This document shows, in pieces, positions 123-20,106 of a stretch of DNA of 64,000 nt. A program made the position numbers and the translations under genes. Under the pieces are notes generated by a model. It saw only the letters and a list, made by a program, of their open reading frames with translations. It did not search any database and had not been told where the DNA came from. Origin of the DNA: Pristiophorus japonicus (Eukaryota); assembly GCF_044704955.1 (NCBI RefSeq), contig NC_091995.1, positions 53,506,001-53,570,000 of the forward strand, given 5' to 3'. Position 1 is the stretch's first letter; each line of letters begins with the position of its first letter.

Positions 123-371
123 GCCCCCACACCTCGATGCACCTTTACATCCACTCCAACAACCTCCCTGACCTGCCGGCCTTCTCTGTGCCCGGGATGT
201 TGGATAACCTTCAGACTGAGTACTACGACAGCCTCCTGAACAAGACCGAACCCAGGCAACAGTGGATGGCCGACAATTTTGCAGACGACTACTGGCTGGA
301 GCAGACCAAGACTGCCGACACCATTCACAGGCTCCTCTCCAGCAACATCGCCCGATTGACCATGCTCACTG
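123..371 (+). CDS. MHC class I-like heavy chain, alpha1 domain exon (phase 1-1)
   Basis: Acceptor ttctctcctcAG at 121-122 and donor G|GTGCGT at 372. Translates (G)PHTSMHLYIHSNNLPDLPAFSVPGMLDNLQTEYYDSLLNKTEPRQQWMADNFADDYWLEQTKTADTIHRLLSSNIARLTMLT, with class I alpha1 motifs GxH, LPxF, YYDS, PRQQWM and YW. 249 nt. Confidence 0.9.
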
Positions 372-439
372 GTGCGTCTCCTTTAACTTCCGCTGTGCCT
401 TCAGGTTAAAACAGAACTGGGCTGTGTGTAGTTGCCCAT

Positions 440-915
440 TAGACAACTGATCCCTGGGATGAGAGGGCTGTCTTATGATGAGAGGGTGTGTAGAATGGGC
501 CTCTGGAGTTTAGGCGAATGATAGGTAATCTCATTGAAACCGATAAGATTCTGAAGGGGATTGACAGGGTAGATGCTGAGAGATTATTTCCCTTGGCTGG
601 AGTGTCTGGAACTAGGGGGCACAGTCTCAGGATAAGCGGTCGGCCATTTAAGACTGAGATGGGGAGGAATTTCTTCACTCAGAGGGTGGTGAATCTTTGG
701 AATTCTCTGCCCCAGAGGGCTGTGGAGGGTGAGTCGTTGAGTATATTCAAGGCGGAGATGGACAGATTTTTGGACTCTCGGGGAATCAAGGGATATGGGG
801 ATAGTGCAGGAAAGTGGAGTTGTGGTGGAAGATCGGCCATGATCTTATAGAATGTTGGAGCAGGCTCGAGGGGCCGAATGGCTTAGTCCTGCTCCTTATG
901 TCATGTTCTTTTGTG
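440..915 (+). mobile_element. CR1 LINE 3' fragment
   Basis: ORF 518-850 matches the CR1 ORF2 C-terminus (TRGHSLRI...FFTQRVVNLWNSLP), followed by the CR1 3'UTR stem ggctcgaggggccgaatggc. Confidence 0.9.
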
Positions 916-1024
916 TTGATCCATCAAAGGTTTCTCAGTGAGGATTGTTGCTCCCAAGAGACATTGAGAACGGGCTATTCACCTCCACTTACACAATTAA
1001 AAGGGAAAAAAAGATGACAACACC

Positions 1025-1285
1025 GTTAACGTAGTATAACATCCCAAGGTAATTCACAGGAGCGATTATCAAACATTAGCACAGGTCACCCAAACCTTGG
1101 TCAAAGAGGTAGGTTTTAAGGAGCGTCTTAAAGGAGGAAAGAGAGGCGGAGAGGTTTAGACAGGGAGTTCCAGAGCTTGGGGTCCAGGCAGCAGAAGGCA
1201 CGTCCACCAATGGTTGAGCGATTATAAGGGGGGATGCTCAAGAGGGCAGAATTAGAAGAGCGCAGACATCTCGGAGGGTTGTATT
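1025..1285 (-). mobile_element. L2-like LINE 3' fragment
   Basis: Starts with a degenerate ttaacgtagt..catcccaagg..ttcacagg, as in the reversed tail at 4340-4405, followed by typical reversed L2 coding remnant. Recognised by eye. Confidence 0.5.
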
Positions 1286-1704
1286 GCTGGCTGCCTGTAA
1301 TTGAAGTTGCTAAGGCAACAGCTTGAGGGTTTTGTTAATTAACAACCAATGAGATCTCTTTCAGCAGCCCTACACTACAATCTGAAGGCACTGCCTGAGA
1401 GAGCTGTCAGTGCTATTTTAGACTTTAGACTTTATTTCTCTTTGTCTTGTTTATCCGCTGCTGTAAGTGATGTGTACGCGCTGTGTGTCTCTGCTCTGTT
1501 AAGCATTTTGTGTATTTCCCATTATCAAGCCACACAGCAGCAAAAGCGTATCTAACAGGATTTCCATTTTGATTTCATGCTCCCCAGCGACATCAGCTGG
1601 TGAATAGGACAATGAGGAGAGGGCCGAGTGTAGGGCCCTGCACCCTGCCCCCACTCCAAACTCCACCGACACCACCCTGACAATGCTTTTATACTCCCTC
1701 TCAG

Positions 1705-1855
1705 GAGCTTGACGTCACTGGCAAGGCTGGCATTTATTGCACATCCCGGATACCACAGGGTACCTCGCTCGACCCCTCCACAGGGCAGCTAGAGTCAACC
1801 ACCTTGGCGTGGGACTGGAGCCAGACCGGGTGAAGACGGCAGGTTTCCTTCTCTA
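1705..1855 (-). mobile_element. Partial reverse copy of the tRNA-derived SINE seen at 8763-9125
   Basis: ctggcaaggctggcatttattgc and ccagaccgggtgaagacggcaggtttccttctcta are reverse complements of the SINE 3' half. Confidence 0.6.
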
Positions 1856-2030
1856 ATCATCCCATCATCATAGTCAGTCCCTCAACATCGAGGAAGGCTT
1901 TGAAGGGGTGGAAGATGCCTGTGCATGAGTTCTTTTAAAGTGGGGTGGTCGTTGCACACTGGCTACCACGCAGGCTTAGCAGAGCGAGGTCTTGGTCCAG
2001 TGGCAAGGGGGTCCAAGACGACTGGAGACC
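1855..2030 (-). mobile_element. Non-autonomous RTE-related element fragment
   Basis: Begins catcatcatagtcagtccctc, like the RTE tail at 19202-19250; its body matches 12400-12522. Confidence 0.6.
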
Positions 2031-2319
2031 TGTACAGGCCTAGTTGCGTACGAGTGGGATGCGAGCTGTAAGCTCGGGGCTGAGCAGCGCCCTTCAGTGA
2101 GATGGTGAGAGATCCGAGGCGTGGGAAGTGGGGGTGAGAGAGTTGAGGTACTACCTCCTGACTGAGGGCAGGCATTGGGATGGCCAGAGGTCCACTTTGT
2201 GGAAGGAGGAGAGGTCAGATTGGCCGCAGCCATTGCACACACCACGTGCTCGCCAGGGGCTCCACAGTTGATGGGAGCAGCGGCCGGAGGAAGATCCAAG
2301 ATGGCGGACGGGATGGTTT

Positions 2320-2442
2320 CCCCAGTGCAGTGCTGAGGGTGTGCTGCACTGTCAGAGATGCCGTCTTTCAGACGAGTCGGCAAACTGAGGCCCTGTCTGC
2401 TCTCTCAGGTGAACGCAAGAGATCCCATGGCACTATTTCGAT
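2320..2442 (+). mobile_element. Deu-domain SINE fragment (SacSINE1/AmnSINE-like)
   Basis: gtgctgcactgtcagagatgccgtctttcagacgag...ctctctcaggtgaacgcaagagatcccatggcactatttcga resembles the DeuSINE core domain as recalled. Confidence 0.65.
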
Positions 2443-2956
2443 ATTTCTATCTTCTAACGTCATGTCAACCCTGTTAGGCTCCTGGTCAATATGGAGGTAA
2501 AGTAATTATTCAATATTTCTGCTATTTCGCCGTGAGTTTATCGTGTGTGTCCCTTAGTGGACCTGTTCCTATCCTGTGTTACCTTTTGTTATTTCTGCGT
2601 CAGTAGAATACTTTTCAAATCTTTTTCTATTCTTTGGTAATTTAATTTCGTAGATCCTCTTTGCCTTCCTGATTTTTTTTTGTCTTTGATCCTAATCTCT
2701 TTGTATTCCCTATTGTCATTCTCTTCTTTATTGTCTATGTACTTGGTGTCTGCCTTTTGCTTTCAATTTTGCCCTTATCTCTTTATTCATCTCTGGTCCT
2801 TCATCACTGGCTAGTTTGCTCGTGTTTTTTTATTGAATGAGAAATGTAAATTCAGTTTAAAGGATGTGACGTAGAGGCCATCACTGAGACCTGGCTGGGT
2901 ATGATTCTAGGTTATTAGTTCTTTAGGCAGGTCAGGGAAATTGGAGCAGCAATATT

Positions 2957-3720
2957 GGCCCTGAAATTCCGGTCGGAGGCTTCTTTCGGACTAACGCCTC
3001 CGACCGGAGAAATTTTCCGGAAGTACCTGGTGGTCCCGGAGACCTCTTCGATTCCGGTGGGGAGGCCTTCTCTTCCCGTGCTGCGAAGCGCACTCCCGTC
3101 CTCGAGGTACGGACGCAGAAGGTGCAGTCACATGTGACTGCTCAACCAATCAGGTAAAGTATTCTCAATTAATAGCAATGGGAACTCTGTATCTACAAGT
3201 TCTCACTGTTACTGAGAACAAAAAATCCCAAACACAATAACACCAAATAAAAAATAAAAAACACACCTCACATAATTAAAATGAATTGAAATGAAAGTTA
3301 ATAAATATCTCGGAGAAAAAAATCCGTGTTTTTAAAAAGTTTTAAAAATTATGGTTTAAAATAAATTTAATGTAGTGGGCAGGGTTTTAAACTTAAAATG
3401 TGTTTTTTAAATGTTATTTTTTATGTTTGAAGTGTGTTTTAAAACTCTTACGCTGTAAAAGTAGACTATGCACCTGCTTTTATCAGGCGCAAGAGTTTTG
3501 AGGACATTTGCTGGGCAAGATATGGGTAAATCCCGCAATCTTGCCCTTGCAAATGTCCTCGTTCCCGAGATATAGAAGATCTGTCAAGTTCCAGCTTGAC
3601 ACATCGGAAAAGCCGGTTTTCAGCACATGTGCATTGTGTGCTGAAAACCGGCTTTTGCGATGCCTTCCCGGGTCTGTACACACTCCGTATGGACCCGGGG
3701 GAGGCCGGGATTGCTACCTC
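2957..3720. mobile_element. MITE-like non-autonomous DNA element inserted in the CR1 endonuclease
   Basis: Interrupts CR1 coding sequence; degenerate terminal inverted repeat (aaattccggtc / ggccgggatt); possible ATT target duplication; AT-rich core; internal hairpins. Confidence 0.5.
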
Positions 3721-4339
3721 ATTGTTACAGCATTAGATATCACTCAGGGTGAGCAGGCAGTAGAAACGCTATGGGTAGAACTGAGAAATAGAAAAGGATG
3801 TAAGACTTTGGTGGGAGTTTTCTACAGCAGTGATAGCAGTGATAAAGTAGCAGGATACATAAACATGGAGATCAGAGATACTTGCTGGAAAAGCACAGTG
3901 GTTATAATGGGAGTCTTTGGAGTCGCAAAGGCAGAAAATTTCTTGAGTGTATTCGGGACAGTTTTCTAGAACAATATGTTCCCGAACCAAGAAGAGAACC
4001 GACCATCTTAGATTTAGTGATGAGTAATGAGCCTGAATCAGTCAATGATCTAACGGTGTGGGAACATCGAGCGAACAGTGACCATAATATGATTGAATTC
4101 GATATTAGGTTTGAGAGGGAAAGGGTGAGTCACGAACCAAGGTTTTAAATCTAGGTAAGGTTGACATTGGAGGGATGAGGCAGGAATTGACCACAATAGA
4201 CTGGGCAGAACTATTAATAGATAAAACTACAGATGAAAGTGGGAGGTCTTCAAAAACAGTATTTGGTAGAATACAAGACCTGCACATACCCCTAATAGGA
4301 GATACGAGGAAAATTAAAATAAATCAAGGGGAGGAACTA

Positions 4340-4405
4340 AACAACAACAACTTGTATTTATATAGCGCCTTTAACGTAGTGAAACCTCCCAAGGCGCTTC
4401 ACAGT
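4340..4405 (-). mobile_element. Short L2/SINE 3' tail ending in (TTG)n
   Basis: aacaacaacaacttgtatttatatagcgcctttaacgtagtgaaacctcccaaggcgcttcacag. Confidence 0.6.
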
Positions 4406-4884
4406 ATGAGATAAAAAATTTGAAAGTGGAGGAACTAACTAGGTTAATATATAAAACATTACAAATTCATGATGTTCCAAAACACTCTCGATTCAGGAAT
4501 TGTCCCCATGGATTTTAAAACTGCCAATGTCACACCATTATTTAAGAACGGTAGGAGAGATAAACTAGAAATGATAGACCTATTAGTCTAACGTCGGTTG
4601 TGGGGAAGTTACTTGAATCTGATATTAGGGACTGAGTGACTGAGCACTTGGACAAATATTAACTGATCAGAGAGAGCCAGCATGGATTTGTAAAGGGTAA
4701 GTCATGTCTAACGAAGTTAGTTGAATTCTTTGAGGAGATAACCAATGTGGTAGACAAAGAACATCAGTGAAGTATGTTGGTGAACCACTTGGGTTCACTG
4801 GTTAGCTTCATGGTCATTTTTATAGACACAGGATTTTTAAAGTAAACTCAAATTTTCACAGTTCGCTGGTAGGATTTGAACACT

Positions 4885-5730
4885 CAGTGCCCCCCCAATA
4901 TCACCCCCAGTGCCCCCCCAATATCACTCCCAGTGCCCCCCCAATATCACCCCCAGTGCCCCCCCCAATATCACCCCCAGTGCCCCCCCAATATCACCCC
5001 CAGTGCCCCCCCCAATATCACCCCCAGTGCCCCCCCCAATATCACCCCCAGTGCCCCCCCCAATATCACCCCCAGTGCCCCCCCCAATATCACCCCCAGT
5101 GCCCCCCCAATATCACCCCCAGTGCCCCCCCAATATCACCCCCAGTGCTCCGCCCAATATCACCCCCAGTGCCCCCCAATATCACCCCCAGTGTCCCCCC
5201 AATATCAGTCCTAGTGCCCCCCACCCAAATGACCCCCGGTGCCCCCCCAAAATCACCCCCGGTGCCCCCAATATCAACCCCAGTGCCCCTAATATCACCC
5301 CCAGTGCCCCCCCAATATCACCCCCAGTGCCCCCCCCAATATCACCCCCAGTGCCCCCCCAATATCACCCCCAGTGCCCTCCCCAATATCACCCCCTGTG
5401 CCCACAATATCACCCCCAGTGTCCCCCCAATATCACCCCCAGTGCCCACAATATCACCCCTAGAGAGCCCCCCATATCACCCCCAGTGCCCCCCCAATAT
5501 CACCCCCAGTGCCCCCCACTCTCACCCCCAGTGTCCCTAGTGCCCCCCAACAATATCACTCCCAGAGAGCCCCCCCAATATCACCCCCAGTGCCCCCCAC
5601 TATCACCCCCAGTGCCCCCCAATATCACCCCCATTGTCCCTCGTGCCCCCCAATATCACCCCCAGAGAGCCCCCCCCCAACATCACCCACAGTGCCCCCC
5701 CAATATCACCCCAGAGAAATCCCCCCAGAG
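4885..5730. repeat. C-rich minisatellite, ~22-23 bp unit (CCCCCAATATCACCCCCAGTGCC)
   Basis: Roughly 35 tandem copies with variable C-run length. Confidence 0.95.
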
Positions 5731-5941
5731 AAGTTCCTCCCCTATGAACCCTGCGGATTCCAGCCCCCTCCCCTGCCGCCCCCCCCCCCACCCCGGACTC
5801 GCTCTGTACCCTTCATTGCCACTCACTGAACACCGAGAACTTTCTCATTTAGCCACGGGGGCTATGGGGGTTCTGGCCAGCGGGGAGATAAATGGAGATG
5901 TTCTGCCAATAACATCGGCCTGACCTGTTGTTCCTTTCCAG

Positions 5942-6214
5942 ATGTCAAGTACTTCCAGGGGCTCTGGGGCTGCACACTGTACGATAACAACAGCACCAAC
6001 GGGTTTATAAAGTTGCACTTGAATACCTTTAGCGAGATTGAATGTGACACGAGCACAGTGCGTTGCAACGCAACAGGAGCCCTTGCATTTCTGAAGAATA
6101 TAATTACTCGGATCTTCACCAAAGATATTACTTTTATCCAGTCAATGTGTACCAGCTGTATTCAACATTTGCAGAAAGCCCTTCAAGTTGGGAAAGCAGC
6201 ACTGGACAAAAAAG
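5942..6214 (+). CDS. MHC class I-like heavy chain, alpha2 domain exon (phase 1-1, GC donor)
   Basis: Acceptor ttcctttccAG (5940-5941). Translates DVKYFQGLWGCTLYDNNSTNGFIKLHLNTFSEIECDTSTVRCNATGALAFLKNIITRIFTKDITFIQSMCTSCIQHLQKALQVGKAALDKK, with QxxxGC (C101) and CIxxLxKxLxxGK (C164) motifs. 273 nt, ending AAG|GCAAGT. Confidence 0.85.
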
Positions 6215-6314
6215 GCAAGTGTGAAATCTAATCTGGGTATGAATTTTTTATCTGGTGTGGGTGTAAACTGGATGTGGGTGTAATCTGGGTGGCGAGTGTA
6301 ATCTCGATGTGACG

Positions 6315-7925
6315 TTGACTATCACTAAAGAAGTAGTATTCGGTAAAATAATGGGACTAAAGACGAACAAGTCCCCTGGACCTGATGGCTTACATCCCAG
6401 GGTCTGAAAAGAAGTGGCTACAGCGATAGTGGATGCATTGGTTGTAATCTACCAAAATTCCCTGGATTCTGGGGCGGTCCCAGCGGATTGGAAAACTGCA
6501 ATTGTAACACCCCTATTTAAAAAAGGAGGCAGGCAGAAAACAGGAAACTATAAACCAGTTAGCCTAACATCTGTCGTTGGGAAAATGCTGGAGTCCATAA
6601 TTAAGGAAGCAGTAGCGGGACATTTGGAAAAGCATAATTCAATCAAGCAGAGTCAGCATGGTTTTATAAAAGGAAAATCATGTTTGACAAATTTGCTGGA
6701 GTTCTTTGATGATGTAACGAGCAGGGTGGGTAAAGAGGAACTAGTGGATGCAGTGTATTTTGATTTCCAGAAGGCATTCGATAAGATGCTACCTAAAAGG
6801 TTAACTGCACAAGATAAAAGTTCACGGGGTTGGGGGTAATATATTAGCATGGATAGAGGATTGGCTAACTAATAGAAAACAGAGAGTCAGGATAAAAGGG
6901 TAATTTTTCAATTGGCAAACAGTGACTAGTGGGGTGCCGTAGGGATCGGTGCTGGGGCCTCAACTATTTACAATCTATTGTAATGACTTAGATGAAGTAC
7001 CGAGTGTAATGTAGCCAAGTTTGCTATGATACAAAGATGGGTGGGAAAGCAAATTGTGAGGACACAAAAAATCTGCAAAAGGCTATAGACAGGCTAAGTG
7101 AGTGGGCAAAAATTTGGCAGATGGAATATAGTGTGGGAAAATTGTTATCCACTTTGGCAGAAAAAGTGAAAAGCAAATTATAATTTAAATGGAGAAAAAT
7201 TGCAAAGTGCTGCAGTACAGAGGGACCTGGGGGTCCTTGTGCATGAAACACAAAAGGTTAGTATGCAGGTACAGCAAGTAATCAGGAAGGCAAATAGAAC
7301 GTTGGCCTTTATTGCAAGGGAGATAGAGTATAAAAGCAGGGAAGTCCTGCTACAACTGTACAGGGTATTGGTGAGGCCACACCTGGAGTACTGCATATTT
7401 AAGGGGGGATATACTTGCATTGGAGGCTGTTCAGAGAAGGTTCACTCGGTTGATTCTGGAGATGAGGGGGTTGACTTATGAAGATAGGTTGAGTAGGTTG
7501 GGCCTATACACATTGGAGTTCAGAAGAATGAGAGGTGATCTTATCGAAATATATAAGATAATGAGGGAACTCGACAAGGTGGATGCAAAGAGGATATTTC
7601 CACTCATAGGGGAAACTAAAACTAGGGGGCATAGTCTCGGAATAAGGGGCCGCCCATTTAAAACGGAGATGAGGAGGAATATCTTCTCTCAGAGGGTTAC
7701 AAATCTATGGAATTCTCTGCCCCAGAGAGCTGTGGAGGCTGGGCCATTGAATATATTTAAGGTGGAGATAGACAGATTTTTGAGCGATAAGGGAATAAAG
7801 GGTTATGGGGAGCGGGCAGGGAATTGGGGCTGAGTCCATGGTCAGATCAACCTGATCTTATTAAATGGCGGAGCAGGCTCGAGGGGCCAAATGGCCTACT
7901 CCTGCTCCTATTTCTTATGATCTTG
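6315..7925 (+). mobile_element. 5'-truncated CR1 LINE (RT domain plus 3'UTR), frameshifted
   Basis: KSPGPDG, NYKPVSLTSVVGKMLE, QHGF..GKSCLTNL and VYFDFQKAFDK motifs, plus 3' stem and ttcttatg tail. Confidence 0.95.
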
Positions 7926-7980
7926 TGATTGTCCAACCAATGTTCTGGAGTTAGTGATGTGATTCTCAGTGCCTCCTCAG

Positions 7981-8256
7981 TTGCCCCGAAGGTGCTGGTT
8001 TTCCAAAGGCAGTCCCCCAGTGAGGAGAGCGCGAGTCTTCTGTGCCTCATCACGCCCTTCTACCCTCGCGCCGTCAATGCCACCTGGCTGAGGAATGGAG
8101 AGGCTGTATCGGATGGCTATGTCGTGCAAGTCCTACCCAACCACGACGAGACATATAGGATGGAGATCCTCATCGAGATCCAGGACAATGACCCAAAGAA
8201 CTACTCCTGTCAGGTCCAACACAGCAGCCTGTCAAAGACGCTGACAGTGAGGTCGG
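7981..8256 (+). CDS. MHC class I-like heavy chain, alpha3 (Ig C1-set) exon
   Basis: Acceptor cctcctcAG (7979-7980) and donor G|GTAAGT (8257). Translates VAPKVLVF...LLCLITPFYPRAVNATWLRNG...VLPNHDETYRM...YSCQVQHSSL, the canonical class I alpha3 motifs. 276 nt. Confidence 0.95.
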
Positions 8257-8762
8257 GTAAGTCACGTGTCCTAGAATGCTGCAGCACCGACGGGTGCCTT
8301 TGGTGCCGGCTCTTTCAGAGAGCTATCCAATTAGTCCTACTGCCCTGCTCCTTCCTCATGCTCCTGCAAATTTCTCCTTTCAGAATATATCCAATTCCCT
8401 TTTAAATGTTGCAACTCAATCTGTCTCCTCCACCCTTTCAGGCAGTGCGTTCCAGATCACAACAACTCGCATCCCTCTTTCTGGTTCTTCTACCTTCAAT
8501 CTGTGTCCTCTGGTTACCAACCCTCCTGCCTCCTGCCACTGGAAACCGTTTCTCTTTATTTACTCATCGCGAGTCGCGGGTCGAGGAAATATAAAGGAAC
8601 GTGGGGCGGGCGGGGCGGGGCGAGCGGGGTGGAGGGAGGGCGGGGGGGGGGGTGGTGGTTGCGGTGCAGAGAGAGAGATTGGAGAAACCAATGGAAGAGT
8701 GAGGAGAGCATATCTGTAGAATTTGACCAGCACCAGGCTGGAAAGTGACTGAAATTAAACTA

Positions 8763-9125
8763 CGGTAGCATAATGGTTATGTTACTGGACGAGTAATCCA
8801 GAGGCCGGGACTAATGATCCGGAGACGTGAGTTCAAATCCTACCATGGCAGCTGGGGAATTTAAATTCAATTATTTAATTAAATCTGGAATAAAAGAACT
8901 ATGATCAGTAACAATGACCGTGAAACCATTGGATTGTTGTAAAAACCTGTCTGGTTCACGAATGTCCTCTAGAGAAGGAAATCTGCTGTCCTTACCTGGT
9001 CTGGCCAATATGTGACTCCAGACCCACAGCAATGTGGCTCTCCACCATCTTCTCAAGGGCAATTAGGGATGAGCAATAAATGCTGGCCTTGCCAGCGATG
9101 CCCACATCCCATGAATGAATAAAAT
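8763..9125 (+). mobile_element. tRNA-derived SINE with LINE-like tail
   Basis: Pol III A box TAGCATAATGG (~8766) and B box GTTCAAATCC (8831); tail gcaataaatgctggccttgccagcgatgcccacatcccatgaatgaataaaa. Confidence 0.8.
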
Positions 9126-9513
9126 AAATGAGACATACAACACATGATCAGATGTAGGTGCTGAGACCGGGGACCAAATAGTCACTCTCCAATGGGAGGA
9201 ATTCATATCCTCCGCTCTTCGAGCTCCCCACAAGGGGAAGGCTGGCAAATCATGGGCGTGTGGCAGATGATGTCCAGCCTCAGCTCAGTGAGTGATACTG
9301 AGAGAAAGGAGAGAAAATATTAACACGTTTTAATAAAATCAACTAGCAGCAATGCAACAAAAAGGAAAAGGTTAATATTTATTTATTTATGTCCCCATCA
9401 AGGAGAGGGACATTGGTGTGCGTGAGTGAGTGAGTGCAATACTTCACAGTTCCAGCACCCAATATCACCCATCAAACACTCTCGAGGTCAGGTATTATAT
9501 ATCCAGACTTATA

Positions 9514-10080
9514 TCCAGAGTAACATTCCCTCTACACCGCCCATCCCACACTCCCAGGGAGGAATACTAGACCAGGAGTAACGATCCCTCTACACCGCCC
9601 ATCCCACACTCCCAGGGAGGAATACAAGACCAGGAGTAACGATCCCTCTACACTGCCCATCCCACACTCCCAGGGAGGAATACAAGACCAGGAGTAATGT
9701 TCCCTCTACACTGCCCGTTCCACACTCCCAGGGAGGAATACAAGACCAGGAGTAACGTTCCCTCTACATCGCCCATCCCACACTCCCGGGGAGGAATACT
9801 AGACCAGGAGTAACGTTCCCTCTACACCGCCCATCCCACACTCCCGGGGAGGAACACTAGACCAGGAGTAACGTTCCCTCTACACCGCCCATCCCACATT
9901 CCCAGGGAGGAATACATGACCAGGATTAACGTTCCCTCTACACTGCCCATCCCACATTCCCAGGGAGGAATACAAGACCAGGAGTAATGTTCCCTCTACC
10001 CAGCCCATTCCTCACTCCCGAGGGAGGAACACTAGACCAGGAATAACGTTCCCTCTACCCAGCCCATTCCTCATTCCTGG
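9514..10080. repeat. 58-bp minisatellite, ~10 copies
   Basis: Unit ccaggagtaacgttccctctacaccgcccatcccacactcccagggaggaatacaaga; period 58 (9572 to 9630). Confidence 0.95.
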
Positions 10081-10289
10081 ATGAGCACTCCTGTGTTGGA
10101 CTGCTTTCTTGGTCTAATTTGTGTCGTTACTTTAAAGACCAGAGTTAACACACATTCAGTTGTAACAATGCAGGAGTAGGTCCTTATTGAAACATCATCC
10201 TACACCATTCCAGTAGGAGTGCTCAAGTCTTTAATGAGACATCATGCTACACGATTCCAGCATAAGCGAGCAGCAGAGACTCACAAACA

Positions 10290-11765
10290 CAGTCTATCGA
10301 CTCTGGATCGGTTCCTATGGACTGGAGGGTAGCTAAAGTGACACCACTTTTTAAGAAAGGAAGGAGAGAGAAGGCGGGTAATTATAGACCGGTTAGTAGT
10401 GGGGAAAATGTTGGAATCAATTATTAAAGATGAAAAGCAGCATATTTGGAAAGCAGTGACGGGATCGGTCCAAGTCAGCATGGATTTATGAAAGGGAAAT
10501 CATGCTTGACAAATCTTCTGGAATTTTTTGAGGATGTAACTAGTAGAGTGGACAAGGGCGAACCAGTGGATGTGGTGTATTTGGACTTTCAAAAGGCTTT
10601 TCACAAGGTCCCACACAAGAGATTGTTGTGCAAAATTAAAGCACATGGTATTGAGGTAATGTACTGACGTGGATAGAGAACTTGTTGGCGGACAGGAAGC
10701 AGAGAGTCGGGATAAACGGGTCATTTTCAGAATGGCAGGCAGTGACTAGTGGGCTGCCGCAGGGCTCAGTGCTGGGACCCCAGCTCTTTACAATATACAT
10801 CAATGATTTGGATGAGGGAATTGAGTGTAATATCTCCAAGTTTCCAGATGACACTAAGCTGGGTGGAGGTGTGAGCTGTGGGGAGGACGCTAAAAGGCTG
10901 CAGGATGACTTGGACAGGTTAGGTGAGTGGGCAAACGCATGGCAGATGCAGTATAATGTGGATAAATGTGAGGTTATCCACTTTGGTGGCAAAAGCATGA
11001 AGGCAGAATATTATCTGAATGGTGACAGATTAGGAAAAGGGGAGGTGCAACGAGACCTGGGTTTCATGATACATCAGTCATTGAAAGTTGGAATGCAGGT
11101 ACAGCAGGCAGTGAAGAAGGCAAATGGTATGTTGGCCTTCATAGCTAGGGGATTTGAGTATCGGAGCAGGGAGGTCTTACTGCAGTTGTACAGGGCCTTA
11201 GTGAGACCTCACCTGGAATATTGTGTTCAGTTTTGGTCTCCTAATCTGAGGAAGGACGTTCTTGCTATTGAGGGAGTGCAGTGAAGATTCACCAGACTGA
11301 TTCCCGGCAGGACTGACATATGAGGAGAGACTGGATTGACTGGGCCTGTATTCACTGGAGTTTAGAAGGATGAGAGGGGATCTCATAGAAACATATAAAA
11401 TTCTGACGGGACTGGATAGGTTAGATGCGGGAAGAATGTTCCCAATGTTGGGGAAGTCCAGAACCAGGGGACATAGTCTAAGGATAAAGGCTAAGCCAAT
11501 TAGGACTGAGATGAGGAGAAACTTCTTCACTCAGAGAGTTGTTAACCTTTGGAATTCCCTACCGCAGAGAGTTGTTGATGCCAGTTCATTGGATATATTC
11601 AAGAGGGAGTTGGATATGGCCCTTACTGCTAAAGGGATCAAGGGGTATGAAGAGAAAGCAGGAAAGGGGTACTGAGGTGAATGATCAGCCATGATCTTAT
11701 TGAATGGCGGTGCAGGCTCAAAGGGCCGAATGGCCTACTCCTGCACCTAGTTTCTATGTTTCTAC
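10290..11765 (+). mobile_element. 5'-truncated CR1 LINE with frameshifts and stops
   Basis: RT motifs GLPQGSVLGP and SKFPDDTK (FADD altered); (TTCTATGT)-type tail at ~11751-11764. Confidence 0.95.
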
Positions 11766-12293
11766 CAATTCCCCCTTTGATCCCTCCATTCCATGCAAAG
11801 CACCAATAAATCACAGTAAAACAAAGATATGTACAAATAGCAACAGAATTACAACACGGACCCAACAAACATGCACTTAGCTTTTCTCAATCTCTTCCAA
11901 TCATTTTATTGCCATGGTTGCATTGCACTCAAACTCTTCCCATTCCCATAAACACAAGTGACAGAGTTGGCACATTCCAGACCATCACAGACATGGCTGA
12001 GCTACTTTCACACATTGAGTCACCCTCCTTATCTCTGCAGATACATTTGTCTTAAACCTGCTTACACAATACATAGCTCACAACCTGTGCTCAGCTGTTT
12101 TGGCTCATCCTGCACTGGTCCCACAGACAGCCTGGAAAGGGCATTGAGACACTCGGGTAGTGTGACACAGAACACAGTCCCGATCCAGAGTAACATTCCC
12201 TCTACACAGTCCATTCCTCACTCCCGGGAGGAGTAACACTAGACCAGGAGTAACATTCCCTCTACATAGCCCATTCCATGTTCCTGGGGAGCA

Positions 12294-12960
12294 ATCATAG
12301 GCGGCAGTCCCTCGAACTAGGATGACTTGCTTCCACACGAGTTCACTGATGTTTCAATGAAGGACCCGATATTCCAGTCCTGAACTCCAGTTGAGGGGAT
12401 GGAAGATGCCTGTGCGTGGATCTTTTTAACGTGTGGTGACCGTTGCACACCAGCCACCACACGGGCTCGACAGAGCTAGGCCTTTATCCAGTGGCAAGGA
12501 TTAACCAGGATGACTGGAGACCTGTTCTGCTGCACAGATCTAGTGCGCACACATATCGCAGTGTGGGCTGGCCCGTGCTGCCCCTGGGTCCTCGGCTCTT
12601 CTGGGCTCTGAACTCAAGCCTCTCCTAGACCCTAATCACATCCCTCTACAGTCTCTCGCCGCTCCTTCGCCCTGACCTCGCCGCTCCTGCTGTACCTGCC
12701 CACGTGCCAATCACCGACCTGGATCTTGGTGATGTCCCTCTTCACTGACGTCGCTCTCCTGCTCCAGTGCGTGCTGCTCTCTGGAGTGGTACGCCCCCAC
12801 GCTGCTCCTTCCGCTCCCCGGCCTGCTCCGAAGGTGCTCTCAGGCTGGGGGCCGCTCAGCCTGTTGGGCCAGGCCTCCATGCTGCTTCTTCCGCTCCCCA
12901 GCCTGCTCCTACAGATAGCCTGAGGAATTGCTTTTCTTACAGATGGGAGCTGGTGCACAG
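12294..12960 (-). mobile_element. Non-autonomous RTE-related element
   Basis: atcataggcggcagtccctcgaactaggatgacttgcttccac matches the RTE 3' tail at 19202-19250, but the body is non-coding and shared with 1855-2030. Confidence 0.6.
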
Positions 12961-13395
12961 TCCAGCTGGACCATTCTCAAAGTCTCTGGGGGGTGGGGGT
13001 GGAGGGGGAGGGGGGGTGGGGGGGGAGAGGTGAACCTGATCTCAGGCCGCAGCACAGAAACTGGTGACAGCGAATCAGCAGGTCTGCTTTACACCCCGCT
13101 CGAAGTCAACGGAAAAGAAAAGTGGGGCAGGGGGTAAAACAGGAGCCCCCTGGCGATCAGCCAAGACCAATCCCACCCCTCACTGCAAAATGGAAAGTTG
13201 AGGGATTTCACTGTCGGGCCGATTGCTGTTTCGGGGACGGGGACGGGGGGACGGGGGGACGGGGGTCGATGATCGGAGAGGTGCTTCCATTGTCAGGGCC
13301 ATGAAGGCTCCTGGTGAAGTGGATTGAGATCTTCAGCACCTTGCCCTTCACTGTCACTGTCCCCTAACATGCTGTATATTTTACCTGGTGTGCAG

Positions 13396-13522
13396 GAGGA
13401 CGAGGGTCGAGTGACACCATTAGTCCTGGCCCAGTGCTGGGGCTGTTGGCTGTGCTGGCAATAATGGCGGGAGTGGTGTAGAGAACGAGAGCAGCAAGGA
13501 GAGAGCAAAGGTGTACGCACAG
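13396..13522 (+). CDS. MHC class I-like connecting peptide/transmembrane exon with in-frame TAG at 13479-13481
   Basis: Acceptor tgcAG (13394-13395) in phase 1 and donor AG|GTGAGT at 13523. Reads GGRGSSDTISPGPVLGLLAVLAIMAGVV*RTRAARREQRCTH: a hydrophobic stretch followed by a basic stop-transfer cluster. Confidence 0.75.
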
Positions 13523-13631
13523 GTGAGTAGGGACACGGGTCCGGCTCCAGATTCCTCTTCACCACCTCAAAACAAACTACTTGACAAGTGAATGTGGCAA
13601 TCTCTAACCTCGTCCCCTTTCTCATCCCCAG

Positions 13632-14562
13632 ATCAGCATTAATTGCTAACCCAAACCGTGACTCTCACTAGCTGCACTGCTCTCAGTACAAGATGGAGGC
13701 TCTCGCTGCTGTACAGACAAGTGAAGACGAACCTGAGCAAGTTCTGCGTTTCCTCCAACATGGTCACTGGTTGGATGGATCTTTTGCTACTTTGCACTGA
13801 CCTCTGTTATTAATTTTGTACTGTTTTGTTTAAGGCCAAACTCTGGGCCTGGGTCTCAATGTACTGCCGCTTAACCTTTGAACCTTGGCTTCTCAATCGG
13901 CACCTTGACTTTTGAACCCTAGCTTCCCAATCGGCGCCTTGACCGTTGAATCCGAGCATCCCAATCGGCATCTTGACCGTTGAACCCTGGCTTCCCAATC
14001 GACAGCTTGACCATTGAATCCTGGGAATCCGATCAGCACCTTGACCGTTGAACCCAAGTGTCCTAATCTGCACCGTGACCCTTGAACCCTGCAGTTCCCT
14101 TTGGCACCTTAACCTTTGAACCCTAGGTTCCTATTCGGCACCTTGACCTTTGAACACTCGGGTTCCCAGTCAGCCCAGACACACTGGGGCATAGTCTCCT
14201 ATCTCCAATGACTTACACGAGATGAATTAGCGTCCGTCTCAGTCCAGTTCTGAAGCTCTCCCCGACTCTAACTGGCAATGGCCCTGGGAGAGGCCCCTGG
14301 CCGGTGCGGCAAAGGGAACAATGCCAGAGCAGTGCCAGGGCGGGTTGGGGCTGAGACATGTTGATGGCACAGAGTAGAGGGAGCTTTCCTATGCAGCTGA
14401 CGCTGTGGGACATTCATGGACTAGTGTCATCAAACATGGACAACACTGGAATAAATCAGGACCGTGGGATGTACGAACCCTTCAGCTCAGGGATTTCTTA
14501 AACTGGAAATGATAAATATTTTCAATCTGTATTTTTGTATGAAATTTTTTCCTGCTATTAAA
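13632..14562 (+). other. Last exon: in-frame cytoplasmic tail (R)SALIANPNRDSH* at 13632-13671, then 3'UTR
   Basis: Intron 13523-13631 has a branch-like ctctaac and a pyrimidine tract ending ccccAG; phase 2 matches the TM exon donor. Candidate poly(A) signals are AATAAA 14450-14455 and ATTAAA 14557-14562. Confidence 0.55.
13865..14170. repeat. Degenerate 34-bp tandem repeat (~9 copies) in the putative 3'UTR
   Basis: Unit ~cggcaccttgaccgttgaaccctggcttcccaat; period 34 (13898 to 13932). Confidence 0.85.
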
Positions 14563-15037: not shown

Positions 15038-17597
15038 TCATAGATTAAGTCTCTCAGGTGGTCTGCGCTCCCTCGTGGAGCGCCGCAGTTGGGGCTCTGG
15101 CTGTTGAGCCTTGGCCTGCGTGTCTGTCCCCTGTGGTGATTCCGGCCTGTCCGGGCTGACCGCAGGGACTGTGCATGCTACTGAATGTTCTTGTTGCTTG
15201 TTCACTGGTGGTGGTGTGAATACCATCTCATGATCTTCCTCAGGTTCCTCAGTGTCCATGCTGAACCTTTTTTTTTACTTGGTCTAGATGCTTGCGGCAT
15301 ATCTGCCCATTGTTAAGTCTAACCACTTTGACCCTATTCCCCTCTTTCCCTATTACAGTACCTTCAAGCCATTTGGACCCCGAAGCATGATTGAGAACAA
15401 ATACAGGGTCATCGATTTCTATACATCACCCCTTTGAATTACGGTCATGGTACTCGTTTTGGGACTGGGGCTTGCCCTCAACAATGTCTGACAGGACTGG
15501 ATGAATGAGGGACAGCCGAGTTTTGAGTGTACGTTTCACAAGTAGTTCTGCGGGCGGGACCCCCGTGAGCGAGTGCGGTCGGGACCTATAGGCCAGTAGG
15601 AGGCGCGATAGGCGGCATTGAAGGGAGGGTCCTTGAATCCGGAACATGCCCTGTTTTATGATTTGGACCGCACGTTCCGCCTGACCATTGGAGGCCGGCT
15701 TGAACGGTGCTGTCCTGACATGGTTGATGCCATTACCCAACATGAACTCCCGGAATTCATAGCTAGTGAAACACGGGCCGTTGTCGCTAACAAGGATCTC
15801 CGGCAAGCCATGGGTCGCAAAGACCGCACGTAGACTCTCCACAGTGGTGGATGTTGTGCACGAATTCAAAATGATGCACTCGATCCATTTCGAGTAGGCA
15901 TCAACTGCAATGAGAAACATTTTTCCCCTGAACGGGCCCGCGTAGTCTACGTGAATACGTGACCATGCCCTGGTAGGCCAGGGCCACGGGCTGAGTGCGC
16001 CCTCCCTGGGGGCATTGCCCAACTGGGCACATGTTGTGCACCTGCGAACACAGTGTTCCAGGTCTGAGTCAATTCCCGGCCACCACACATGTGACCGGGC
16101 AATGGCCTTCATCAGCACGATGCCTGGGTGCTCGCTGTGGAGTTCCCTGATGAATGCTTCCCTGCCCCTCTGGGGCATAACTACCCGGCTGTCCCAGAGT
16201 AGGCAGTCGGCTTGGATGGAGAGCTCATCCATCCATCTGTGAAACGGTCTGAGCTCCTCAGGGCATGCTCCGTGTGCGGGCACTCAATCCCCAGTCAGGA
16301 CACATTTCTTAATCAGGGATAGGAGGGGATCTCTGTTTGTCCAAATTTTGATCTGGCGGGCTGTGATGGGGGAGCCTGCACTGTCAAAGGCATCAACGGC
16401 CATGACCATCTCAGCGCTTTGCTCAGCTGCCCCCTCGGTGGTGGCCAGTGGAAGCCTGCTGAGTGCATCAGCGCAATTTTCGGTGCCTGGCCGGCGCCAT
16501 ATGGCGTAATCATACGCAGCCAGCGTGAGAGCCCATCGCTGTATTCGAGCTGACGCATTGGCATTGACAGCTTTGCTGTCAGACAGCAGGGATGTTAATG
16601 GCTTGTGGTCCGTTTCTAACTCGAATCTCCTGCCAAAAAGGTACTGATGCATCTTTTTCACCCCATTGACACATGCGAGTGCTTCCTTTTCAAACTTCCC
16701 ATATCCCCGTTCTGCTTGAGAAAGTGATCTGGAGGCATAAGCCACAGGTTGGAGGTGGCCCTCATCATTACTCTGCTGCAACACGCACCCAATCCCATAG
16801 GATGATGCATCACATGTCAGAACCAATTTCTTACAGGGGTCGTACAGGGTCAACAGCTTATTTGAACAAAGTAGGTTCCGTGCCCGATTGAAAGCCCGTT
16901 CCTGACAGTTCCCCAAAACCAATCATAACCCTTACGCAGGAGCACGTGTAGCGGCTTCAACAATGTGCTTAAGTTCGGCAGAAAGTTCCCGAAATAGTTC
17001 AAGAGTCCCAGAAATGAACGCAACTCCGATGTGTTGCAGGGTCTAGGCGCTCGTCGAATCGCCTCTGTTTTGGATTCGGTGGGCCGAATCCAGACTGCAG
17101 CAACCCTCCTGCCCAGAAACTCGCCCTCGGGGGCCAAAAACACAAACGTAGGCTTCTTGAGTCGCAGGCCTACCCGGTCCAGTCGGCGTAGCTCCTCCTC
17201 CAGGTTATGGAGGTGTTCCTCGGTGCCTTGACCCATGAAATACAATTGTTCCAGGAATGGATTTGAGCAGGCTTTCCATGTTCCTTTGAAAAATCGCGGC
17301 TCCTGATCGAATGCCAAACGGACATCTGTTGTAGACAAACAGTCCCTTTTGCGTGGTGATGGTGGTCAGTAGTTTGGATTCGTCGGCCAGTTCCTGGGTC
17401 ATGTAGGCTGCACGCACGGCATTCCACTGATCTTACCCCCAAGGAATCCCCGAGGAAATACCCGGCGTCCGACCGGAAACGACTTCGAATTGCAGCCGGA
17501 GATTTGTCATGTTCATAATGTGACACCAGTGTTACTGGGCCACCTACAGATGTCACAGGGTTAGTATGGACACTAACAGGGCAAAAACCCATCGGAC
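15038..17597 (-). pseudogene. pol: Decayed Gypsy/Ty3 pol (RT - RNase H - integrase)
   Basis: Integrase with H..HPG...C..C zinc finger, HVDYAGP, VSDNGP and SNGQAERAV; RNase H LTCDASSYG, EKEALA, TDHKPL; RT fragments. In-frame TGA at 16284-16286, frameshifts, and RT catalytic DD motif missing. Confidence 0.92.
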
Positions 17598-19112
17598 AGT
17601 CATTTTCCAACATTCCATTGACTCTGGATCAGTTCCTATGGAGTGGAGGGTAGCCAATGTAACCCCACTTTTTAAAAAAGGAGGGAGAGAGAAAACAGGG
17701 AATTATAGACCGGTCAGCCTGACATCGGTAGTGGGTAAAATGATGGAATCAATTATTAAGGATGTCATAGCAGTGCATTTGGAAAGAGGTGACATGATAG
17801 GTCCAAGTCAGCATGGATTTGTGAAAGGGAAATCATGCTTGACAAATCTTCTGGAATTTTTTGAGGATGTTTCCAGTAGAGTGGATAAGGGAGAACCAGT
17901 TGATGTGGTATATTTGGACTTTCAGAAGGCGTTCGACAAGGTCCCACACAAGAGATTGATGTGCAAAGTTAGAGCACATGGGATTGGGGGTAGTGTACTG
18001 ACATGGATTGAGAACTGGTTGTCAGACAGGAAGCAAAGAGTAGGAGTAAATGGGTACTTTTCAGAATGGCAGGCAGTGACTAGTGGGGTACCGCAAGGTT
18101 CTGTGCTGGGGCCCCAGCTGTTTACACTGTACATTAATGATTTAGATGAGGGGATTAAATGTAGTATCTCCAAATTTGCGGATGACACTAAGTTGGGTGG
18201 CACTGTGAGCTGCGAGGAGGATGCTGTGAGGCTGCAGAGCGACTTGGATAGGTTAGGTGAGTGGGCAAATGCATGGCAGATGAAGTATAATGTGGATAAA
18301 TGTGAGGTTATCCACTTTGGTGGTAAAAACAGAGAGGCAGACTATTATCTGAATGGTGACAGATTAGGAAAAGGGGAGGTGCAAAGAGACCTGGGTGTCA
18401 TGGTACATCAGTCATTGAAGGTTGGCATGCAGGTGCAGCAGGCGGTTAAGAAAGCAAATGGCATGTTGGCCTTCATAGCAAGGGGATTTGAGTACAGGGG
18501 CAGGGAGGTGTTGCTACAGTTGTACAGGGCATTGGTGAGTCCACACCTGGAGTATTGTGTACAGTTTTGGTCTCCTAACCTGAGGAAGGACATTCTTGCT
18601 ATTGAGGGAGTGCAGCGAAGGTTCACCAGACTGATTCCCGGGATGGCGGGACTGACCTATCAAGAAAGACTGGATCAACTGGGCTTGTATTCACTGGAGT
18701 TCAGAAGAATGAGAGGGGACCTCATAGAAACATATAAAGTTCTGACGGGGTTAGACAGGTTAGATACAGGAAGAATGTTCCCAATGTTGGGGAAGTCCAG
18801 AACCAGGGGTCACAGTCTAAGGATAAGGGGTAAGCCATTTAGGACCGAGATGCGGAGGAACTTCTTCACCCAGAGAGTGGTGAACCTGTGGAATTCTCTA
18901 CCACAGAAAGTTGTTGAGGCCAATTCACTAAATATATTCAAAAAGGAGTTAGATGAGGTCCTTACTGCTAGGGGGATCAAGGGGTATGGCGAGAAAGCAG
19001 GAATGGGGTACTGAAGTTGAATGTTCAGCCATGAACTCATTGAATGGCGGTGCAGGCTAGAAGGGCCGAATGGCCTACTCCTGCACCTATTTTCTATGTT
19101 TCTATGTTTCTA
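17598..19112 (+). mobile_element. Young 5'-truncated CR1 LINE with uninterrupted RT frame (~470 aa)
   Basis: Open frame to 19014 with GVPQGSVLGP and SKFADDTK; 3'UTR stem and (TTCTATGT)n tail at ~19092-19112. Confidence 0.97.
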
Positions 19113-19906: not shown

Positions 19907-20106
19907 NNNNNNNNNNNNNNNNNNNNNNNNNNNNNNNNNNNNNNNNNNNNNNNNNNNNNNNNNNNNNNNNNNNNNNNNNNNNNNNNNNNNNNNNNNNNNN
20001 NNNNNNNNNNNNNNNNNNNNNNNNNNNNNNNNNNNNNNNNNNNNNNNNNNNNNNNNNNNNNNNNNNNNNNNNNNNNNNNNNNNNNNNNNNNNNNNNNNNN
20101 NNNNNN
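19907..20106. other. Assembly gap (200 N)
   Basis: Run of exactly 200 N, likely a fixed-size scaffolding placeholder. Confidence 0.99.

Follow-up and report, generated by a model that had tools for sequence, protein, structure and literature searches.

We analyzed the exon organization of an MHC class I gene on the forward strand of a 64,000-nt stretch of the Japanese sawshark (Pristiophorus japonicus) genome (termed the window, with positions counted from its first nucleotide). The alpha1 exon (123 to 371, 249 nt) is bounded by an AG acceptor at 121 to 122 and a GT donor at 372 to 373, the alpha2 exon (5942 to 6214, 273 nt) by an AG acceptor and a GC donor, and the alpha3 exon (7981 to 8256, 276 nt), which encodes an Ig C1-set domain, by AG and GT. 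A 127-nt exon with AG and GT borders (13396 to 13522) encodes the connecting peptide and a C-terminal hydrophobic segment. These four exons are all in phase 1, and their translations amount to 83 + 91 + 92 + 28 = 294 residues, split codons included; sequence, splice sites, and translation thus bear out the open chain of about 294 aa proposed in the initial annotation. In the C-terminal exon, coding sequence runs to 13478 (...GRGSSDTISPGPVLGLLAVLAIMAGVV), an in-frame TAG at 13479 to 13481 directly follows the hydrophobic segment, 41 nt 5' of the last exon junction, and the remainder is 3' untranslated region (3'UTR). A 109-nt GT..AG intron (13523 to 13631) separates it from the last exon, which extends from 13632 to approximately 14470, carries AATAAA at 14450 to 14455, and is 3'UTR only. 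Six exons make up the gene: a leader exon located upstream of the window, alpha1, alpha2, alpha3, the C-terminal hydrophobic exon, and the 3'UTR exon. Five had been annotated initially; the fifth of these (13632 to 13671) is real but noncoding, and the true fifth coding exon is the leader.

The intron between alpha2 and alpha3 (6215 to 7980), absent from the initial annotation as a GC-AG intron, starts at a non-canonical donor (AAG/GCAAGT) that is the only one preserving phase 1 at the 3' end of alpha2. The codon formed across this junction (G+TT, valine) agrees with the motif DKKVAPK in a public 320-aa P. japonicus model, P0139. The same intron contains sense-strand LINE reverse-transcriptase fragments, with an RVT_1 match at 6414 to 6839. 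P0139 is a UniRef/RefSeq entry annotated as "MR1-like isoform X1", and the translations of the alpha1, alpha2, alpha3, and C-terminal exons are 100% identical to it, so the gene was not hidden, as had been thought. Whole-chain analyses used this identical database protein, and searches of the window used single exons; by tblastn, each exon is single-copy in the window, which contains no neighboring gene.

We then analyzed transcripts, mapping reads over positions 7900 to 13750 of the window, that is, from alpha3 to the 3'UTR. The joint between alpha3 and the C-terminal exon, which skips 5139 nt (GT..AG), was found in three cDNA runs and was absent from the DNA run. cDNA contigs of 843 to 1900 nt from three samples (X5, X6, and X7) connect alpha3, the transmembrane (TM) exon, and the 3'UTR exon exactly as modeled, with the 109-nt intron removed; they cover alpha3 without mismatch and include both downstream joints and the TAG, which showed 0 mismatches in the transcripts of all three samples. 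The junction check on RNA-seq data suggested at the outset therefore recovered both downstream joints in cDNA. The spliced mRNA was assembled at a depth of 10 to 195 across the three samples, with zero differences among the three individuals from alpha3 to the 3'UTR. The contig from X6 extends 708 nt beyond 13750 and stops at about 14458, adjoining the AATAAA at 14450. On the 5' side, contigs reach 2 nt ("AG") beyond the alpha3 acceptor, as expected if alpha2 ends in ...AAG, and 638 and 668 nt of contig sequence lie 5' of alpha3, equal to the length of alpha2, alpha1, and leader/5'UTR; the alpha1-alpha2 and alpha2-alpha3 joints are deduced from these lengths and from the public model. These results demonstrate that the gene is transcribed and that alpha3, the TM exon, and the UTR exon are spliced together in this order.

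The three ectodomains all have the same best match in the PDB, chain 8gm8_A. The E values were 1e-19 for alpha1 (next chain 4e-12, UGA), 2.7e-17 for alpha2 (next chain 0.045, none other being below 0.04), and 5e-35 for alpha3 (next chain 1e-17), and Pfam identified a C1-set domain in alpha3 (6e-16) and an MHC_I domain in alpha1 (4e-6); the domain matches are far above chance. The title of PDB entry 8GM8, released on 2024-11-27, reads "shark nonclassical MHC class I, UFA". In a maximum likelihood (ML) tree (LG+C20) without UBA, UDA, UEA, CD1, or MR1 as labeled rows, the sawshark protein fell within a clade of 23 shark and ray members that includes nurse shark UFA (support, 100/100), in its shark half and with branching in species-tree order, and UGA-like proteins were sister to this clade (100/99). 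The search recovered UFA orthologues from no fewer than 9 genera of sharks and 6 of rays; among 25 matches, one protein came from the sawshark, and rays had two to six. An AF2 model of the sawshark protein (pLDDT, 84) superimposed on 8GM8 over 256 of 257 residues (VIA Z score, 25.2; root mean square deviation, 2.7 Å; 50% identity; Foldseek E value, 1e-30; TM score, 0.88). The gene is thus very probably the Japanese sawshark orthologue of UFA, a nonclassical class I lineage that occurs across elasmobranchs, apparently at single or low copy number, and is regarded in the field as CD1-like.

The initial annotation had left two options, placement in an already described shark lineage, CD1-like ones included, or in a new one. 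The strong divergence of alpha1 and alpha2 favors the latter, since the Pfam MHC_I profile gives 33.6 bits for the sawshark protein versus 175 bits for the classical UAA of Triakis scyllium, and alpha2 has a single PDB match below an E value of 0.04; but this match is nurse shark UFA itself, and the 100/100 clade follows the species tree across the shark and ray genera listed above. Sequence searches and phylogeny therefore both recovered a named chondrichthyan lineage as closest relative, and the odds of a new, undescribed lineage of sharks are close to nil. UFA has been described as CD1-like in its binding region and as located in an MHC-Ib cluster together with UDA and UEA (PMC10751288); in the supplement of that study, the genes are designated simply "MHC-Ib", without the name UFA, and our literature search did not retrieve a primary UFA paper.

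Membership of CD1 proper was also considered and was rejected. P0139 has no match to the CD1-type Pfam family PF16497 (MHC_I_3) at an E value of ≤0.01, nurse shark UFA scores 21.6 bits, under the 35-bit cutoff, and the sawshark protein, which ends in ...AIMAGVV, has no cytoplasmic residues and hence no tyrosine-based sorting motif. In the ranking of structures against the AF2 model, classical class I, FcRn, chicken YF1*7.1, and UGA lie at Z scores of 22 to 24, a tie within about 1 to 2 Z units, and chicken CD1-1 ranks 42nd (Z score, 22.3); such a fold-level ranking among class I-like families gives no information on kinship with CD1. The discoverers of UFA call its orthology with CD1 hard to assess (PMC10751288). 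What the two share is a hydrophobic binding region devoid of peptide-terminus anchors, and lipids like those of CD1d have been reported for UFA (PMC12562908, PMC10751288); the sawshark protein differs in having no PF16497 match, no tail, and no YxxPhi endosomal sorting motif.

We evaluated the groove in an alignment with Triakis UAA, using only motif-anchored positions. Among the nine residues that anchor peptide termini (Y7, Y59, Y/R84, T143, K146, W147, Y159, W167, and Y171), Y59 alone is kept, as originally claimed: position 7 is H, T143 is replaced by K/L, K146 and W147 by I, Y159 by S, W167 by H, and Y171 by A. The L84 put forward with them holds if the helix is ungapped, and in the MAFFT alignment the position falls within a 4-residue deletion. 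Alpha1 carries a single sequon, NKT at precursor residue 66, which confirms that the N86-type site is missing. Hydrophobic residues make up a fraction of 0.53 of the alpha2 helix, versus 0.35 ± 0.06 across the 24 class I proteins used for comparison, a value of more than 2.5 standard deviations above them that was measured on helix segments, not on a modeled pocket. The alpha2 domain has the conserved C101/C164-type cysteine pair (precursor C120/C182), a clade-specific additional pair (C144/C151), and one further cysteine, C179. The short alpha1, the lack of N86, and the hydrophobic alpha2 helix, although correctly observed in the initial annotation, characterize the UFA clade as a whole and are not peculiar to this gene; the 4-residue gap at the end of alpha1, for example, is common to all members. 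Based on the alignment and on helix hydrophobicity, the protein is a nonclassical class I chain that has lost its peptide-terminus anchors and whose groove appears unusually hydrophobic, in agreement with the first description.

We propose that the heavy chain adopts the usual class I ectodomain fold, with alpha3 presumably mediating its association with beta2-microglobulin. Since eight of the nine peptide-clamping residues are lost and the alpha2 helix is apolar, the ligand would most likely be a lipid or another hydrophobic molecule, which the protein may present to receptors of T or NK type. Lipid binding by UFA and UGA, as judged by crystal structure and mass spectrometry, is mentioned in a review as a personal communication (PMC12562908).

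Alternatively, UFA could have a closed or empty groove and, in place of antigen presentation, serve as a receptor, a ligand, or a transporter, like FcRn, HFE, ZAG, or the NKG2D ligands. An empty groove would be equally compatible with the lost peptide anchors, GPI-type C termini are typical of the stress ligands ULBP, RAE-1, and MILL, and FcRn chains rank high among the structural matches. The latter are tied with others, however, and the second-best matches include, in a statistical tie, the lipid-presenting chicken YF1*7.1. Moreover, the alpha2 helix is enriched in apolar residues, whereas the grooves of FcRn and HFE are closed by charged or bulky ones, and the lipids seen in UFA, according to the personal communication, resemble those of human CD1d (PMC12562908). 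We therefore consider a non-presenting function unlikely and favor a groove that would hold a hydrophobic ligand.

The protein terminates directly after a hydrophobic stretch of 15 to 17 residues preceded by a cluster of small residues. By eye, the pattern is SGGRGSS / DTISPGP / VLGLLAVLAIMAGVV, and the same pattern occurs in all 22 orthologues. We asked whether the gene could be decaying, with the TAG having arisen by recent nonsense mutation and cut off a cytoplasmic tail. The TAG is in the next-to-last exon, and downstream of it 27 codons remain open in frame, beginning with a basic, stop-transfer-like run (RTRAARREQR...SALIANPNRDSH). Yet 27 open codons have a probability of about 0.27 by chance, and every full-length UFA-clade protein of sharks and rays (22/22) stops at this position, 0 to 4 residues after the hydrophobic stretch; the stop therefore predates the shark-ray split. 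All other exons are intact, and the spliced mRNA was assembled in each of the three samples at the depth given above. Stops within 50 to 55 nt of the last junction are usually tolerated by nonsense-mediated decay, and the 41 nt found here are within this limit. Decay of the gene is accordingly very improbable. We also rejected a conserved readthrough tail, given the chance expectation for the open frame and the stop shared at the same site by every orthologue.

Since the stop after the hydrophobic segment is clade-wide, it is ancestral and resembles a GPI signal rather than a defect. UGA and UAA have TM segments of 22 to 27 residues followed by tails of 28 to 43 residues. We tentatively suggest, at a confidence slightly short of even, that the UFA lineage, including the sawshark gene, is GPI-anchored or otherwise without a cytoplasmic tail and would bind lipids without the endosomal recycling that a tail motif provides. 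The anchor could be GPI, as in mouse Qa-2, or the product could be a tail-less membrane protein; either way, a CD1-type tyrosine sorting motif would be unusable. Ligands would then be loaded in the secretory pathway or at the surface, a cell biology unlike that of CD1 despite the "CD1-like" label. Our literature search found no earlier statement of this proposal.

Mouse Qa-2, a GPI-anchored class Ib protein with a stop codon in its transmembrane exon, is a recent, peptide-binding derivative of classical H-2. Both proteins are class I heavy chains in which a stop truncates the TM exon, leaving a short hydrophobic end and no tail; in UFA, the truncation is old and found throughout the clade, the groove is of a non-peptide type, and the GPI anchor is putative.

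With an intact, expressed UFA gene now seen in a squalomorph shark, there is further support for the view that both shark superorders and the rays have retained this CD1-like lineage from a time before they diverged. The tail-less ending of the whole clade is a concrete and testable difference from CD1 that bears on the site of ligand loading. The importance is modest, since UFA was already named, its structure deposited, and the sawshark gene publicly modeled as a generic MR1-like protein: this is not a new kind of molecule.

With respect to the nearest relatives, classical UAA (Triakis scyllium O46840, P0083) shares the exon-per-domain, phase-1 plan, the C101-C164-type disulfide, and the Ig C1 alpha3 domain with sawshark UFA; identity is about 30%, and the sawshark protein keeps 1 of 9 anchors and lacks the N86 sequon and the tail. 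UGA (PDB 9CH4; sawshark orthologue P0039), the nonclassical sister lineage encoded in the same genome, has also been called CD1-like (PMC12562908). It is about 30% identical to UFA, matches MHC_I with 97 bits versus 34 for sawshark UFA, and differs by an N-x-S/T where alpha1 ends, a charged alpha2 helix, and a TM segment of 22 residues followed by a basic cytoplasmic tail of 28. Nurse shark UFA (8GM8; UniRef A0ABF7PPZ1_GINCI) is the closest in all ectodomains (alpha1, 46%; alpha2, 38%; alpha3, 67% identity) and shares the 4-residue shortening of alpha1, the lack of the N86 sequon, the additional cysteine pair of the alpha2 sheet, and the apolar alpha2 helix; its crystal construct was made without the C-terminal segment, so the comparison covers the ectodomains and not the anchoring. 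The nurse shark belongs to the Orectolobiformes and the sawshark to the Pristiophoriformes, and position 7 is Y in the former and H in the latter. Most orthologues carry an N-x-S/T sequon at the site of sawshark C179; H7 and the unpaired cysteine that replaces this sequon might shift the ligand of the sawshark protein further.

We read the gene as four phase-1 exons on the + strand, directly from the window and with a scripted check of the splice contexts: alpha1 at 123-371 (249 nt; acceptor ...ctcctcag/GC, donor TCACTG/gtgcgt), alpha2 at 5942-6214 (273 nt; ...cctttccag/AT, AAAAAG/gcaagt), alpha3 at 7981-8256 (276 nt; ...cctcctcag/TT, GGTCGG/gtaagt), and a C-terminal exon at 13396-13522 (127 nt; ...gtgtgcag/GA, GCACAG/gtgagt). 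All four exons are present as single copies in the window; the leader exon lies outside the window, of which just 122 bases precede alpha1. The alpha2 donor is GC instead of GT, a rare donor type, which makes 6215-7980 a GC-AG intron; its context, AAG/GCAAGT, is the customary form of such introns, and only this donor keeps phase 1 after alpha2. Both a protein model in public databases and an overlap of 2 nt in cDNA contigs back its use. The translated alpha1-alpha2-alpha3 chain ends in ...GRGSSDTISPGPVLGLLAVLAIMAGVV, followed by TAG at 13479-13481, and has 294 residues including split codons, the same count as that of the open chain in the initial annotation.

The public model is P0139 (UniRef UPI00398EE1A0), a 320-aa protein of the Japanese sawshark, Pristiophorus japonicus, that is 100% identical to the translations of all four exons and has G, D, V, and G at the exon junctions, in agreement with the split codons. 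The gene, taken at first to be hidden, was thus already public under a generic name, [quoted passage not shown] The window searches were made with single, unjoined exons and the whole-chain analyses with P0139. In Pfam, alpha3 matched C1-set (6e-16), alpha1 matched MHC_I weakly (4e-6), and alpha2 had no match. Among sequences of solved structures, the best match of all three domains was 8gm8_A, the chain of nurse-shark UFA (alpha1, 1e-19; alpha2, 2.7e-17; alpha3, 5e-35); for alpha2, no other chain in that set fell below E 0.04. When alpha1 was run with HMMER against 1.84 billion representative proteins, just 14 reached E ≤ 1e-10, and a collection search with the top full-length match gave 25 proteins, exclusively from sharks and rays.

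We searched an AlphaFold2 model of P0139 (55-sequence alignment, mean pLDDT 84) against the PDB. The top match was 8GM8, "Crystal structure of shark nonclassical MHC class I, UFA" (released 2024-11-27), with E 1e-30 and TM 0.88 in Foldseek and Z 25.2, rmsd 2.7 Å over 256/257 residues, and 50% identity in VIA. A maximum-likelihood tree was built from 54 class I proteins, with no labeled UBA, UDA, UEA, CD1, or MR1 rows, and in it the window protein and nurse-shark UFA fell into one clade of 23 proteins with 100/100 support. UGA-like proteins form its sister group (100/99); the sawshark UGA orthologue is a separate protein, P0039 (E 1e-138 to 9ch4_A; the title of 9CH4 ends in "UGA"). Within the UFA clade sharks separate from rays, and the sharks branch in the order Heptranchias, Pristiophorus, Heterodontus, orectolobiforms, lamniforms, carcharhiniforms, which matches the species tree, the pattern shown by orthologues. 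The gene therefore does not represent a new lineage, one of the options first considered, since both the clade and the best structural match place it in a described one: it is a new species member of UFA, a known, named, and crystallized lineage.

Among the proteins recovered, each sampled shark was represented by one UFA gene, and the gene has expanded in rays, with at least five copies in Mobula birostris (P0148, P0149, P0152, P0154, and P0155), three in Hemitrygon akajei (P0009, P0151, and P0157), and two in Pristis pectinata (P0145 and P0146); the ray copies make up at least two old ray sublineages. UFA and UGA have been described as single- or low-copy, and crystallography together with mass spectrometry has pointed to lipids like those of human CD1d in both (PMC12562908, citing a personal communication). 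Our literature search found no primary paper on UFA.

UFA is called CD1-like. The Pfam MHC_I profile scored 33.6 bits over the whole P0139 chain, 97 bits for UGA, and 175 bits for UAA, the classical shark class I protein; the CD1-type profile PF16497 had no match in the P0139 chain. Behind 8GM8, the fold matches at Z 23 to 24 were the lipid presenter chicken YF1*7.1, UGA, FcRn, and classical class I of birds; chicken CD1-1 stood at rank 42 with Z 22.3. By the tool's own criterion, differences of this size count as ties. In its predicted fold, P0139 does not stand nearer to CD1 than to the other class I molecules. We file the gene under UFA and not under CD1; the resemblance to CD1 is one of groove chemistry, as reported by others.

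The residues of the groove were compared by alignment with classical UAA of Triakis scyllium (P0083). Of the nine residues that hold peptide termini, Y59 alone is kept, in line with the loss of peptide anchors originally proposed: Y7 is replaced by H, T143 by K (L if ungapped), K146 and W147 each by I, Y159 by S, W167 by H, and Y171 by A, and Y/R84 corresponds to L if the helix is left ungapped and lies within a 4-residue gap in the MAFFT alignment. NKT at precursor residue 66 is the sole sequon of alpha1, which leaves no N86-type glycan site, as also first noted, and a 4-residue shortening of alpha1 is common to all UFA proteins. In the alpha2 helix, already singled out as very hydrophobic, the fraction of apolar residues is 0.53 and the Kyte-Doolittle mean is +0.58 (UFA clade mean, 0.48 and +0.24), versus 0.35 ± 0.06 and -0.89 in 24 other class I proteins; for its first half the apolar fraction is 0.57 versus 0.31 ± 0.07. 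All of these, from anchor loss to the apolar helix, are traits of the lineage. Homology lends support to the non-peptide ligand originally proposed. Two further features, both in window 6040-6160, concern cysteines (precursor numbering): an extra alpha2 pair, C144/C151 (IECDTSTVRC), is kept in nearly all UFA proteins and is missing in Heptranchias, and an additional C179, specific to the sawshark, lies in SMCTSC at a place where an N-x-S/T sequon is found in most orthologues.

The TAG leaves the chain without a cytoplasmic tail, and we considered whether it was a lesion of the sawshark gene. This was rejected, the ending being clade-wide: all full-length UFA-clade proteins (22/22) end 0 to 4 residues past a hydrophobic stretch of 15 to 17 residues, itself preceded by a Gly/Ser-rich cluster, whereas UGA and UAA have transmembrane segments of 22 to 27 residues followed by tails of 28 to 43 residues. 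The stop therefore goes back to before sharks and rays split; NCBI isoforms vary only at the N terminus or the alpha1 end. The succession of small residues, a short polar spacer, and a short apolar end fits a GPI-attachment signal, an ending with a precedent in mouse Qa-2, and from this sequence pattern we lean slightly toward the UFA C terminus being such a signal. Whether GPI anchored or not, UFA has no cytoplasmic sorting motif, a real difference from CD1. This clade-wide, tail-less, GPI-like ending is the most useful by-product of the analysis.

Transcripts bear on the same stop codon. Four DNA runs, all from a sample that was probably the assembly source, contain the alpha3 exon, as do three small runs from three other samples of a second study. 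With reads placed on window 7900-13750, each small run gave a single contig, of 1719, 1900, and 843 nt at word depths of 17.6, 195, and 10, respectively, that, with zero mismatches, covers alpha3 and passes from it over 5139 skipped nt (GT..AG) to 13396-13522 and then over 109 skipped nt (GT..AG) to 13632, continuing beyond 13750. Neither joint appears in the DNA run, which identifies the three small runs as cDNA and places the TAG in mature mRNA from three individuals. The 638 and 668 nt of contig 5' of alpha3 equal alpha2 (273), alpha1 (249), and 116 to 146 nt of leader and 5'UTR, and the contig overlap at the alpha3 acceptor is the two letters AG, as expected with alpha2 ending in ...AAG at 6214. 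The longest contig terminates at ~14458, adjoining AATAAA at 14450, and the exon from 13632 onward is therefore 3'UTR only. The TAG thus lies in the penultimate exon, 41 nt upstream of the last exon junction, a distance that nonsense-mediated decay normally tolerates, and the spliced 109-nt intron (to 13631) is a 3'UTR intron. The frame past the TAG is open for 27 codons, no more than expected by chance (probability, ~0.27). The arrangement of stop codon and 3'UTR intron (13479-13631) appears to be left over from an earlier exon layout that encoded a cytoplasmic tail.

The introns carry repeats. Fragments of non-LTR retrotransposons (LINEs; endonuclease and RVT_1, + strand) lie in sense orientation in introns 1, 2, and 3 (3882-4148, 6414-6839, and 10446-11284), with very high contig depth there in all runs. 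Two intronic tandem arrays consist of a C-rich 23/47-bp repeat (4885-5712; ~28 copies), which creates long proline-rich pseudo-ORFs, and a 58-bp repeat (9518-10067; 9.5 copies). Downstream of the gene are a retroelement pol remnant with integrase zinc-binding and core domains and RT-RNase H (15426-16922, - strand) and an open LINE reverse-transcriptase ORF of 482 aa (17566-19014, + strand). Directly after an assembly gap of 200 N (19907-20106) comes a satellite with a 37-bp unit (consensus, ACAGGACAGAGAGTGGAGAGCACCAGTTCAAACTGTC), which occupies the window's final 44 kb (20107-64000). Its ~1184 copies run head to tail and are 94% identical, its AT skew is strong (0.4), and it yields a spurious ORF of 1331 aa.
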